Shown here one piece after another: positions 2,310 to 48,989 of a stretch of 64,000 nt of DNA. This DNA comes from Podarcis erhardii. Taxonomy: Eukaryota. The stretch is taken from the NCBI GenBank assembly GCA_964252035.1, contig OZ176210.1; one strand, 5' to 3'. The notes beneath the pieces are model-generated. The model was given only the letters and a program-made list of their open reading frames with translations. It had not been told where the DNA came from and searched no databases. Every line of letters begins with the position of its first letter. The stretch's first letter is position 1. The position numbers and the translations under genes were made by a program.

Positions 2310-2481
2310 GGTAAAATACAAGTTGTTATGGTTCCATTCGTCATATAAAGAACACATTATTTGATGTAATAGCTGTTTGTGAAAACTGGAAAACGTAGCA
2401 TACTGGCGATTGGGAAGATAATTTAAGAAAAAACAAGGATTACAAAAGAGAAGTGACTGTGGCTGTATAGAAGTCTGGCAT
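2310..2481 (+). other. AOPEP: AOPEP 5'UTR portion of the first coding exon (inferred acceptor at 2308-2309)
   Basis: Branch-like CTGAC at 2281, pyrimidine tract gctttcttcttcacAG, then 172 nt to the ATG at 2482. There is no CpG island upstream, so the promoter and first exon are probably outside the window. Confidence 0.6.
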
Positions 2482-3290
2482 ATGAAGATGGAGCTTGACA
2501 TTACCAAAGATGATTTGCCCTTAATGGCAAATACTAGCCACATGCTGGTAAGGCATTATGTGTTGGATCTGGATGTGGACTTAAAAAGCCATGTAATTGG
2601 TGGCACTATAGTTCTGTTCTTTGACACTGACAGCAGTTGCAGAAAAGGAGACAGTGAACAGGTGGAAGAAGCTTGTCATTCACAGTCAGATGGAACCTGC
2701 TGTATTCAGGCACCTGAAGCCTGCTATGTTCCTGTGCCAAATGCAAGTGCTTGCTCAACTAAAAGTGGATGTAATGATTTTGCTGTCTGTAGTAAAGGTG
2801 AAAATGATACTTCTGATAAAAACGGTAGTCATGGCAACAAGGAACGGGCTTCTGGGATTTCTAGTTCAAAAAACTGCTGTGACATTGAGATTCATGGGAG
2901 TGAAGATTTTTTGCTGGTCCTGGACTGCTGTGATTTATCTGTGTTAAAGGTCGAAGAGGTAGATGTTGCTGTAGTTCCAGGCATTGAGAAATTTACCAGC
3001 TCTGCCAAGTTAATGGATGCTTCCAAAGATCCAAGGGATCTTAGAAATCAGATTGTGCATGAACTTGTGACATTACCTGCAGATTATTGGAAGGATCAGC
3101 TTCAGTTTTACAGACTGTGCAGCCAGGCACCTGCTTGTGGAGAGCTTCTGTTTGTTACTGGCACTTGGAGCTTGGAGATCAGGAAAGCAGGTGTCCAGCT
3201 GCCAAAAGATTTCCCTCATGCCATAAGGATATATTACAAAACAAAGCCAGAAGGAAAATCACTGAGCTGGACTACAGACCAATGTGACGG
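2482..3290 (+). CDS. AOPEP: Aminopeptidase O, coding exon 1 (N-terminal domain; phase-2 end)
   Basis: Translation MKMELDITKDDLPLMANTSHMLVRHYVLDLDVD...DFLLVLDCCDLSVLKVEEVD...DFPHAIRIYYKTKPEG matches the vertebrate AOPEP N-terminus as I recall it. Donor GG|GTATGC at 3291. Confidence 0.96.
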
Positions 3291-4468
3291 GTATGCAACA
3301 GTTTTTGGTGTTCTGCTATACTTGTGTTCTGTGCCGGATGGGGCAGAGTTGAATTATAAATAACAATCATTTTGAGGCTGAATTCAGACAGACCGGTAAC
3401 AAAGCAGGCAGAGTTCAGTGCTCATGAAAGTGTAGCAGGATTATATCACTTTAAGTCTGGAACAAGTGAATGCATTTCTTTGAGTCTAAATATTTAAATC
3501 AGTGAACAATTGATGGGTGCATTTTGGATAAAAGGTATTGGAGAGAAACATATTCTGTAAAGCATTTTCACTTTACTATATATTTTTTTTAATTAGCTAG
3601 AGTTAAGAGTTAATATAACAAATCCTTTTGTAGTGAAGGCAAAATATGTTTTGTTAATAGTAAGTTAAAATGTTCTGGATGTGGTAGCTTTGTAAATTTC
3701 TTTAACGTGAAAAAAAAACTTATTTTAATTTGAATCTGAACATGGCTTAGCAGAAGCCAAACAGCAATTTTATCTTTCTATCCATATATAAACAATATAA
3801 TATGTAATATTAACATATTTAGTAGTACTGAAAGCCTAAAGCTGTAAAAATCTGAAATATTTAAGAATTTAAACAGCTTAAATATATGTAGCATATCATT
3901 TTCCTGGACCACACACCTTGTCTACTTCTCTGTTGTCATTTGGCTCACCTTATCTAATGACAGCTTTTGGGCTCTTGGCTGTTTTGTCAATCTAATGTAG
4001 ATTACAAGAGACAAGCCTTTTATTTGTGTATTTTTTCATCCCTTGACACCTGGGCTATTAAATAAATGTTTGTTTATGTAGAAAAAAATCCTTTATTAAG
4101 AGTGCAACTGGGCAAGCCCGAGGGAAATCTATGACCATATTTTTAAAAGGATACATGCATGTAGGATAAGCACTGGGGGAAGGGCAAGCTTAATCTCCCT
4201 CTCCTGGGGCCATTTTCCTAATTCCTATTCTCCTGAAGCTGCTGTTTGCCCTGGGACAAAACATATAAGCACCTGTATGTTTTGTCCCATGGACAAGCAG
4301 CAACTTCAGAAAAGGATGGGGCAATTTAGCTTGGAAAAATTGTATAAGAAAAAGAGTTAATGCCCCTTTCCTCAGCCGTGATCCAAATTGCTTCCCTGTG
4401 GTTGCCCTTGCCATTTTGAAAACCCATGGAGAGATAACTCATGAGTCCTACTGTCTAGTTTGACTATA

Positions 4469-5573: not shown

Positions 5574-5611
5574 GTATGAGCTTTCGTGTGCATGCACACT
5601 TCTTCAGATAC
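5574..5611 (-). ncRNA. Minimal type I hammerhead ribozyme motif (copy 1, antisense arm)
   Basis: Exact reverse complement of 5617-5654. Confidence 0.65.
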
Positions 5612-5616
5612 ACTGT

Positions 5617-5654
5617 GTATCTGAAGAAGTGTGCATGCACACGAAAGCTCATAC
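5617..5654 (+). ncRNA. Minimal type I hammerhead ribozyme motif (copy 2)
   Basis: GTAT-CTGAAGA-A-GTGTG(CATG)CACAC-GAAA-GC-TC-ATAC: conserved core, stem II, palindromic AGCT in place of stem III, stem I GTAT/ATAC; predicted cut after C5650. Confidence 0.75.
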
Positions 5655-5795
5655 CAAGAACTGACTTAGTTGGTCTTTAAGGTGCTACTGGAAGGAATTT
5701 GTTTTGTTTTGACTATGGCAGACCAACACGGCTACCTATCTGTAACTGGAACTATGGAAGGCACCACATTGAGCCGCATGAAATGGAAGTCCATC

Positions 5796-5848
5796 TCAGT
5801 GTATCTGAAGAAGTGTGCATGCACACGAAAGCTCATACCAAGAACTGA
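5796..5848 (+). ncRNA. Minimal type I hammerhead ribozyme motif (copy 3, extended stem I)
   Basis: Same core as copy 2; stem I is GTAT/ATAC, a CAAGA bulge, then TCAGT/ACTGA; predicted cut after C5834. Confidence 0.75.
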
Positions 5849-45618: not shown

Positions 45619-46791
45619 TAAGTGTAACAGTGAAGCAGAGGTTTAAATAATGTTACATTGAAATCAGCAGAACAGACAAATGTTTAACTTTTATCCAATA
45701 TGTACATGTCTATCTGTAGGATAGTTCCAGATTAAAACCACTCTTCCCAGCTAGTATTTGTTTTGCAAACAGTAATTAATTTGCTATGGCACAGTCAATT
45801 GCAAATCCATTTTGGGGTAGAAAACTACAATAATGAAGTTGTTCCATGAACATGGCCAATTCCTGTAGCAAAACAGTTTTGACCCTGCAACAGATCAATG
45901 ATTTTTTGCATATGCAAGTTCCATTTACACAGAATGTGATCTGAATCTACTATTACACAGTGTTAAAACTCTTCCTACCTCACCAACCTTCATGATAGCA
46001 GCTTTTTCTCATTTGCTCCTGGGGATGTGCTTCCTTTGAGGGGTCACTACATTCAGTGCTCCAGAACTATGTTGACTCTTATGCATATAATGCAGAAAAC
46101 ATTACCTTCTGGTACTCTAAAAAGACTAAATAATATGAGCCTTGTGCTTTGTATATGCCAATTGATAGCTATCTAATTTATAAAGGGATGTCTTTATTTC
46201 ATTAATAATATGTAACTTGTTTGGATTCAGTCACTTTTAATTGATAAAAATGTATTTGTTTGCACAGAGTCATTTTCGTTGTGTGACAAGTATGATTACC
46301 TCAGTGTGTTAAAATTCACTGTTGTGAATTTTATCCCTAATCATACCTGTTTTGGTTTTAAGAACATGAATCAAGTATGTTAGGAAAACCTTTTGTCCTT
46401 GTGTGCAGTCTCTCTGTTTTTTTTGTTTTTTACCAAAGAGCTTCATTAAACTTTAAGCAAATACACTAAATTAAGCTAACGTGTCTATGATGTTTTTGTT
46501 GATTAAGTAGTACATGAGAATGATCTAATGTTTCCCCCCCTGTGGCTAATTTTCAAATTGGCACCTGTTACTCTCATTAGTCTTGAAGCCGAGCTGTATA
46601 GACTTGCTGACAGAGAGCTGAGTCTCATGCTGGTTAAACCATGGTTTGGATTTCAGTTGCTCTTTAAGAGTTTGTTAAGGAAATCTAAGAAGTTGCATCT
46701 TTAGATCTTCAATAAATAAGAAAGATTTGAGCTTGGTGGAAGAAAGTATATCTGTGCATTTACATTTGTGGTGGTGGTAGGAGTGGTTCCT

Positions 46792-47902
46792 CAAACTCAT
46801 GCTGGTAGCTTCAAGAACACCATCCAACCATCTCATCCTCTGTCGTCCCCTTCTCCTTGTGCCCTCCATCTTTCCCAGCATCAGGGTCTTTTCCAGGGAG
46901 TCTTCTCTTCTCATGAGGTAGCCAAAGTATTGGAGCCTCAGCTTCACGATCTGTCCTTCCAGTGAGCACTCAGGGCTGATTTCCTTAAGAATGGAGAATT
47001 CTGATCTTCTTGCAGTCCATGGGACTCTCAAGAGTCTCCTCCAGCACCATAATTCAAAAGCATCAATTCTTCGGCAATCAGCCTTCTTTATGGTCCAGCT
47101 CTCACTTCCATACATCACTACTGGGAAAACCATAGCTTTTACTATACGGACCTTTGTTGGCAAGGTGATGTCTCTACTTTTTAAGATGCTGTCTAGGTTT
47201 GTCATTGCTTTTCTCCCAAGAAGCAGGCATCTTTTAATTTCGTGACTGCTGTCACCATCTGCAGTGATCATGGAGCCCAAGAAAGAAAAATCTCTTACTG
47301 CCTCCATTTCTTCCCCTTCTATTTGCCAGGAGGTGATGGGACCAGTGGCAATGATCTTCGTTTTTTTGATGTTGAGCTTCAGACCATATTTTGCGCTCTC
47401 CTCTTTCACCCTCAATAAAAGGTTCTTTAATTCCTCCTCACTTTCTGCCATCAAGGTTGTGTCATCTGCATATCTGAGGTTGATGATATTTCTTCCGGCA
47501 ATCTTAATTCCGGCTTGGGATTCACCCAGCCCAGCCTTTCGCATGATGAATTCTGCATATAAGTTAAATAAGCAGGGAGACAATATACAGCCTCGTCGTA
47601 CTCCTTTCCCAATTTTGAACCAATCAGTTGTTCCATATCCAGTTCTAACTGTAGCTTCTTGTCCCACATAGAGATTTCTCAAGAGACAGATGAGGTGATC
47701 AGGCACTCCCATTTCTTTAAGAACTTGCCATAGTTTGCTGTGGTCGACACAGTCAAAGGCTTTTGCATAGTCAATGAAGCAGAAGTAGATGTAGAAGCAT
47801 GAGTTTGATCAAACTGCGGGAGGCAGTGGAGGACAGAGGTGCCTGGCGTGCTCTGGTCCATGGGGTCACGAAGAGTCGGACACGACTAAACAACAACAAC
47901 AA
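46792..47902. mobile_element. RTE-BovB LINE, 5'-truncated and 5'-inverted
   Basis: 13-bp TSD aggagtggttcct at 46779-46791 and 47903-47915. Minus-strand RT segment 46792-47791 (YAKAFD...GVRRGCILSP...LRYADD...VMYGSESW). Plus-strand 3' end 47792-47902 with a (CAA)n tail. Confidence 0.95.
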
Positions 47903-48989
47903 AGGAGTGGTTCCTGTGTATTCTATGAAATGGTTTGGTCTTGTGGATCAAAATTAATACATATGATGGACTTGGAGGATTCTCATCTCATTTTATATCT
48001 TAGCTAAAAAAAGAGAATCACACTGAGAGTCAGTTCTCAGGTTCTCTTGTAATATATTCTGTTGGGTGAGATTTCATTAGATTGCCTTTTCAACTGAATG
48101 ATGTGAAAAATAAACATTAGATTTGATCACTATAATGCCCCTTTTATTGAAAAATGTACCCAAGAGTGCACATGTAGAAAACAAGCTATTAATTTGTTTT
48201 CTATAGGGGTATTGGGAGCCACTCCAACTTTCTGGGAGGGATTGCTAATTTTTTGTTAACTGGGTGCGGTTTTCAGTCCTTTTTACCCCACCCATGAACC
48301 TGTTCTAGCCTGCTTTTGAAGTTGCCTGCAACTTGGGTTCATGCTGTGTTATAAATTGAAAGCATAGCACCCTGAGGCTCTCCATAATATAGGAAGACTT
48401 GGTCAAATTGTAATCTTTCTTTCTTTTGACTTCAACCAGAGAAACAAGTTAATTTTCCCTAACTGTTACTCATTATATTCACAACTTCATTGTTAAAAGC
48501 AAGTTTCAGTTTGATGCATAAAAGAACTTTGGGAGAGGACAGCTCCAAAAACCATCAAGAAAACACATTTATCAAGTCACATTTGCTTGGTGAATCTGCC
48601 TAACTGCAGCAAAATACAAGAAGTTTCAATGGTATTCTCCCATGAAAACCTGGCAATTCCACAGTGTGAATGAGTGTCAGTGAAAACACTTAAAGAGCAC
48701 TGCTGGGATTTGAGATTATATAAATTAGGTTGAGATAATTCAGTTACATAATTTTAATCCACTAAAGATATTGTGTCTGACACAAAATTAGGTGTATGGT
48801 AGTCTGCCCAAGCACAACCACACTACCAGTGTTGTGGAAGAAGTCTGGAATTGGTTAATGTTACAACAAGAAGCATCAACTGAGTAAACTACATCAGTCC
48901 ACCGCTATAAGGCTATATAAATCAAAATCCCAGCACCACCCTGTGGAGAAGTTTCACAAGTGTCTTGGCTACTGCTTTTTTGCCATGTG

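Follow-up and report, generated by a model that had tools for sequence, protein, structure and literature searches.

Nearly all knowledge of how the second strand of the target DNA is cut and used when long interspersed nuclear elements (LINEs) integrate comes from L1 and R2. BovB, the LINE considered here, belongs to the RTE clade and is noted for its horizontal transfer; to our knowledge, no retrotransposition assay data on the second-strand step are available for this clade. The closest described system is the twin priming of mammalian L1 (Ostertag and Kazazian 2001, through PMC2912911 and PMC2837659), the outcome of which is a single target-site duplication (TSD) of 10-20 nt around an inverted upstream segment and a sense tail. 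The same arrangement was found for a BovB copy at positions 46779-47915 of a 64,000-nucleotide stretch of DNA of the lacertid lizard Podarcis erhardii (contig OZ176210.1 of assembly GCA_964252035.1; this whole stretch is referred to below as the window). To judge from its sequence, the copy was probably produced by a single BovB retrotransposition that was primed from both cut DNA ends and thus represents a 5′ inversion of the twin-priming type. The initial annotation of the window had proposed this reading of the geometry, and it is supported here by the TSD, the position of the tail, the abutting element coordinates of the two pieces, and the lack of a tail on the inverted piece.

Among 5′-inverted L1 copies of human and chimpanzee, microhomology at the 5′ junction is the rule (95% with, 4.6% without; approximately 70% with 2-5 nt; PMC2912911). 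Yamaguchi et al. described 5′ inversions only for human L1 in human cells and for one insert of Nimb-2_DR in DT40 cells, and none for ZfL2-1 (PMC4245944), which agrees with the earlier remark that such inversions are uncommon outside L1. Overhangs or TSDs of 10-20 nt were tied to 5′ inversion in the same study, where it was argued that inversion depends on LINE species, host, and a long overhang; filler was reported as usual at the 5′-side joints of non-L1 LINEs (PMC4245944). Like the copy described here, Nimb-2_DR (I clade; inserted in chicken DT40 cells, with TSDs peaking near 12 bp; PMC4245944) is a non-L1 element with a 5′ inversion, and its insert shows that this outcome is possible outside L1. 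It was, however, an experimental de novo insertion, made by a zebrafish element in heterologous cells, whereas the BovB copy is natural and resides in its own host. Within the BovB family, the ordinary truncated Bov-B_PMu copies (PMC13295347) share with the present copy the (CAA)n tail, a TSD that starts with A, and a Tn-TA site; they are described only as truncated or full-length, never as inverted, and inversion is nowhere mentioned in that 2026 survey of reptilian Bov-B insertion signatures (PMC13295347). A search of the full-text literature for twin priming linked to BovB, Bov-B, RTE, lizard, or snake returned no report, only papers in which the L1 work is cited for other purposes, an earlier record for the RTE clade still being possible. 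The features of the locus are collated below (coordinates refer to the window).

46765-46778, plus strand: target-site context before the first-strand nick, with TTT at -14 to -12 and T at -1 (sequence read)
46779-46791, no strand: 5′ copy of the TSD, AGGAGTGGTTCCT; its last T may instead open the inverted cDNA (1-nt microhomology)
46792-47792, minus strand: inverted BovB segment, from the reverse transcriptase (RT) domain to near the C terminus of ORF2 (frame, Pfam, protein matches, Varanus alignment)
46792-46803, minus strand: first copy of the 12-nt stretch, codons S-M-S-L (inverted repeat I2, alignment); would mark the start of top-strand synthesis on the element RNA
47793-47795, no strand: filler AGA, 2-3 nt, at the inversion junction; non-element
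47796-47902, plus strand: sense BovB 3′ end, comprising the last ~32 codons of ORF2 and (CAA)4 (alignment columns 1017 to tail)
47796-47807, plus strand: second copy of the 12-nt stretch (I2, alignment); would mark the point at which the first-strand cDNA stopped
47802-47815, no strand: 14-nt palindrome AGTTTGATCAAACT (palindrome search of the insert)
47903-47915, no strand: 3′ copy of the TSD; its first A may equally belong to the (CAA)n tail

The composite insertion consists, in this order, of a 13-bp TSD, antisense BovB ORF2, filler, the sense BovB 3′ end, and the second 13-bp TSD. A TSD around the whole had been claimed from the outset, and AGGAGTGGTTCCT was indeed recovered as a perfect direct repeat (13/13 nt; family D5) at 46779-46791 and 47903-47915, that is, exactly at the outer ends of the composite, with 1111 bp enclosed. 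No other perfect direct repeat of this length occurs in the region; when the two 40-nt junction regions were shuffled 5000 times, the longest common word did not exceed 10 nt, in comparison with the 13 nt observed. At this length the TSD falls within the 10-20 nt range linked to inversion. The window contains zero N and no gaps, the flanks of the insertion occur in it once only, and neither another BovB copy nor anything else resembling the 1111-bp insert was found in its 64 kb.

The antisense part was confirmed as RT-coding sequence of the length first estimated (about 1000 bp). It spans 46792-47792 (1001 bp), and the minus strand of 46792-47793 forms a single open frame of 334 codons without a stop, which matches Pfam RVT_1 (E 1.3e-24, profile positions 69-202 of 205). 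In a protein word search the closest proteins were BovB ORF2 fragments of Podarcis muralis (92-95% identity), followed by the BovB proteins of Bos and Varanus komodoensis (~80%); at the nucleotide level the segment is 81.5% identical to a Varanus BovB copy over 985 bp. Its translation ends with ...WLDGVLEATSMSL (...LEATSMSL) beside the 5′ TSD. The segment carries no 3′ untranslated region, tail, or TSD of its own and stops ~95 nt before the 3′ end of the element. By the relatedness of its RT, its (CAA)n 3′ end, and its Tn-TA target, the element is assigned to BovB of the RTE clade, rather than to L1. The copy can be regarded as fairly young on the strength of its sequence, because both an intact frame across 1 kb and a perfect TSD have been preserved. 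It comprises just the last ~1.1 kb of the element, the endonuclease region being missing through truncation, and it is dead on arrival. Two of the protein matches (P0020 and P0037) were BovB ORF2 fragments filed under Mycoplasmopsis arginini and Mycolicibacterium malmesburyense; these bacterial-named records most likely represent contamination with host or bovine-derived DNA.

The sense segment (47796-47902) had been annotated as a 111-bp 3′ end with (CAA)n; the tail was found, in the form of (CAA)4 at 47891-47902, and the length was corrected to 107 bp. The plus strand of this segment encodes SMSLIKLREAVEDRGAWRALVHGVTKSRTRLN... and then enters the (CAA)4 repeat, for comparison with which a range of (CAA)2-6 is given for the 3′ repeat of Bov-B_PMu of Podarcis muralis (PMC13295347). 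At 47880-47902 the ORF2 frame runs on into the tail (…TRLNNNN) with no stop. The Podarcis proteins have a stop after …TRLND; the extreme end of the element is slightly different in the present copy. Assignment of the sense piece to the tail of a Sauria SINE (short interspersed nuclear element) was considered and rejected, as the piece encodes the ORF2 C terminus and ends with (CAA)n, not (ACCTTT)n.

According to Nakatsuka and Ohshima (PMC13295347), a Bov-B insertion is recognised by a TSD that begins with A, usually preceded by T, and by three T about one helical turn (about ten nt) upstream. The pre-insertion site reconstructed here has TTT from -14 to -12, followed by T at -1 and by A at +1, an approximate fit to Tn-TA. 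With this context, the A at +1, and (CAA)4, the end of the sense tail resembles, as read from the sequence, an ordinary site of first-strand nicking and priming by BovB.

Breakpoints were determined by alignment of both pieces (alignment A1) to an uninterrupted BovB copy of Varanus komodoensis (L001:12580-13720). The inverted piece corresponds to columns 29-1028 and the sense piece to column 1017 to the tail. Intact Podarcis proteins cross the breakpoint unbroken (...RWLDGVLEATSM(N/S)L(I/T)KLREAVEDR...HGVTKSRTRLND), so that both the proteins and the Varanus alignment show the two pieces to abut with a 12-nt overlap. In the intact element they adjoin, the part in common being the four codons S-M-S-L (12-13 nt). 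A 12-mer present in both parts had been noted previously and was recovered at the positions first given (46792-46803, reverse, and 47796-47807); scored as an inverted repeat (I2, 46791-46803 / 47796-47808), it extends to 13 nt, since the T that closes the TSD may equally be assigned to the element. Where the two pieces meet head-to-head, the homology of the inverted piece stops at 47792 and that of the sense piece begins at 47796. The intervening filler (AGA) does not match the sequence that lies in the element upstream of where the inverted piece starts, nor that upstream of where the sense piece starts, and amounts to 2-3 nt, fewer than the approximately 4 junction bases annotated initially.

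Set against L1, the likeness lies in the abutting breakpoints and in an inverted piece that lacks the 3′ end, as twin priming is described in PMC2912911 and PMC2837659. The 107-nt non-inverted part resembles those L1 variants that have an 'unusually short non-inverted portion' (PMC2837659). The differences concern both the element and the joints. Unlike L1, BovB is a member of the RTE clade with a single ORF and a microsatellite-like (CAA)n tail; microhomology at the 5′ junction of the copy amounts to ≤1 nt, and its inversion joint holds 2-3 nt of filler; and a duplication of 12-13 nt is present where an internal deletion is usually described for L1 (PMC2837659).

The structural marks of twin priming are present: a single TSD surrounds the composite, the sense tail lies beside the 3′ TSD and the inverted piece beside the 5′ TSD, and the source of the inverted segment is the element sequence directly upstream of the sense segment, a small duplication aside. 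The inverted piece cannot be an ordinary target-primed insertion, because it ends ~95 nt short of the 3′ end of the element. Twin priming accounts for the single TSD, for the absence of a tail from the inverted piece, for the fact that the base of this piece on the 5′-TSD side is the one nearest to the 3′ end of the element, and for the location of the breakpoints within 12-13 nt of each other.

From this footprint only, we infer the following course of events. The BovB endonuclease would nick the bottom strand at T|A, and the (CAA)n tail of the BovB RNA would be reverse-transcribed from the bottom-strand 3′-OH for ~107 nt only. The top strand would be cut 13 nt downstream before first-strand synthesis was complete, and its 3′ end (...GGTTCCT) would serve as the second primer, with the same RNA, a second copy, or a broken RNA as the template. 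The second synthesis would begin ~95 nt from the 3′ end of the RNA, with ≤1 nt of pairing, and would copy ~1 kb of upstream ORF2. The first cDNA would pass the second start by 12-13 nt, by strand displacement or by earlier arrival, with the short duplication as the result. Finally, the two cDNA 3′ ends would be joined with 2-3 extra nucleotides, and the gaps would be filled.

Several observations weigh against this reading. The evidence comes from a single locus, and the footprint is silent on whether one or two RNA templates were used. The complementarity between primer and RNA at the internal start site is 1 nt only, for an overhang of 13 nt, and 22 sites with at least three contiguous pairs were on offer in the same 1.1 kb. 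The inversion joint shows filler instead of microhomology, so that microhomology is found neither between overhang and RNA nor between the two cDNA ends. An exact-sequence look-up of the 345-aa ORF that runs across the 5′ junction gave no record from which a second assembly could be cited, and among 80 BovB-bearing metagenome contigs no complete or decisive second flipped BovB was found. With regard to microhomology, its frequency in L1 does not make it part of the structural definition of twin priming (PMC2912911); its absence weakens the case for annealing of the second primer, not that for priming from both ends.

Four other origins of the composite were weighed against twin priming. In one of them, the first cDNA would have ended after ~107 nt, and the RT would have switched templates, adding 2-3 bases on its way to the 3′ end of a BovB-containing antisense transcript; alternatively, a second BovB RNA would have been copied from the top strand. 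The filler at the joint and the near absence of pairing between primer and RNA suit both versions, 'dual priming' on two RNAs has been proposed for L1 (PMC2837659), and template switching by RTE-like LINEs has produced U6 chimeras in Anolis (PMC4476161). The U6-L1 and Anolis U6-RTE-like chimeras (PMC4476161) resemble the present copy in that a composite lies within one TSD and, in the lizard case, was made by RTE-like machinery; their parts, however, have the same orientation and come from different RNAs, whereas both parts here are BovB, in opposite orientation and with abutting coordinates. A switch to an unrelated antisense transcript leaves the abutting breakpoints unexplained, a proximity of 12-13 nt having a chance of ~25 positions in an element of 3.2-3.5 kb, and priming from the top strand on a second RNA is a variant of twin priming that cannot be distinguished from it by sequence and is no true rival. 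This origin is accordingly improbable. Two independent BovB insertions side by side, or the retrotransposed transcript of a master copy that was inverted before, would both be most unlikely. Nested and neighbouring BovB fragments are common (metagenome contig L044 is an example), and BovB machinery moves RNAs that bear its 3′ end, such as those of Sauria SINEs (PMC13295347). An independent insertion fails nevertheless: any copy made by target priming needs a 3′ end and a TSD of its own, the antisense piece has neither these nor a tail, and one perfect TSD encloses both pieces. These same facts speak against the two-insertion scenario that had been named at the start as a possible refutation. 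A master copy merely shifts the inversion to another locus, and its transcript would have to start exactly at the old TSD boundary; further copies sharing this joint would also be required.

Inversion after insertion and error in the assembly both start from a plain BovB copy. In the former, the 5′ 1 kb of a 1.1-kb truncated sense BovB would have been flipped later through staggered cuts, which would have left the 12-nt inverted duplication. Inversions that arise through staggered breaks are indeed flanked by short inverted duplications, and a 13-nt inverted repeat (I2) is present. One of the breaks, however, would need to lie within ~1 nt of the boundary between TSD and element (chance ~2 in 1100), the TSD is untouched, and recombination between inverted repeats of 13 nt is very unlikely; taken together, a later inversion is highly improbable. 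Its version by recombination at the 13-nt inverted repeats was rejected outright, since an odd 16-nt inverted filler would be needed in the original insertion. A 1-kb block flipped by error, during assembly or sequencing, is about as hard to credit. Repeats are known to endanger assembly, Podarcis muralis having ~52,000 BovB copies (PMC13295347), and the look-up of the exact ORF yielded no second assembly. Such an artefact would nevertheless not be expected to stop exactly at the TSD boundary, to introduce 2-3 non-element bases at the joint and a 12-nt duplication, or to keep a frame of 334 codons, and the window is gapless.

Within the twin-priming reading, the manner in which the second synthesis started deserves separate treatment. 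The palindrome AGTTTGATCAAACT (GATC core) is the sole palindrome of the 1111-bp insert with arms of at least 5 nt, and its centre (47808/47809) coincides with the element position at which the inverted segment starts; the chance of this coincidence, calculated post hoc, is ~3 in 1100. The palindrome is not preserved in the BovB of Varanus and Bos and is variant in some Podarcis copies. When the 3′ end was folded as RNA, no special stability was obtained (z -0.2), and the best fold had no hairpin at the palindrome. The palindrome therefore does not characterise the family, and its position may be due to chance. Priming by fold-back of the cDNA at the palindrome was rejected, as it would duplicate the 3′ end in inverted form and would not invert upstream sequence.

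Weak pairing, filler, duplication, and palindrome together leave room for a start that is independent of annealing, for example at a broken RNA end; one locus is not decisive in this respect. The BovB enzyme would then reverse-transcribe from the top strand without annealing, through loading on an internal RNA end or on a structured site, a start that can be likened to the end-to-end template jumps of R2-type enzymes. On such an annealing-free reading, the palindrome-centred start, the overlap of 12-13 nt, and the near absence of pairing would be mechanistic rather than chance. The overlap is also close in length to the RNA-DNA hybrid for which a stalled first enzyme could provide protection from RNase H. 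This mode of starting is nonetheless considered rather unlikely.

The 80 metagenome loci were mostly short, near-identical contigs of ruminant type that resembled collapsed repeats. Some of the BovB contigs belong to assemblies that bear the label human gut or food metagenome; these contigs were taken for ruminant and none for human DNA, because BovB is an element of ruminants and squamates. Short inverted BovB duplicates were seen at contig ends (L014:1-197, L033:1508-1932, and L039:1-67) and look like fold-back chimeras of a high-copy repeat. The opposite-strand pairs of L014, L033, and L039 were accordingly dismissed as flipped insertions in favour of fold-back or duplication chimeras, and that of L044 in favour of nested insertions. 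In L037:1-1701 (Ga0126362_10000915), antisense BovB (reference 606-1251) meets a sense 3′ piece (reference 2467-3536) head-to-head without a gap. From its sequence, this geometry would fit another twin-primed BovB, in a different host; the antisense piece is cut off by the end of the contig, beyond which the far breakpoint and the TSD would lie.

Elsewhere in the window, the 14-nt palindrome GTGTGCATGCACAC occurs three times in 240 bp (5586-5826), which suggests a short repeat array or a repeated element at that place. Tandem repeats near the insertion site included none relevant to the insertion. An Rfam search of the whole window and a viral-contig scan gave no match, and a scan for bacterial promoters and terminators gave nothing bearing on the BovB locus.

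The finding is a modest one, namely a known insertion outcome at one locus of a LINE clade for which no report of it was found. A twin-primed BovB copy implies a cut in the top strand, 13 nt downstream, at a time when the first strand was still being synthesised, and further that the enzyme can prime from the top-strand end, apparently with almost no base pairing. Repeat annotation splits copies of this kind into two fragments on opposite strands, with inflated copy counts as the consequence. Should the same features recur in other inverted BovB and Sauria SINE copies of this genome, second-strand cleavage in the RTE clade would precede the completion of the first strand, and 5′ inversion in this clade would follow rules unlike those of L1.

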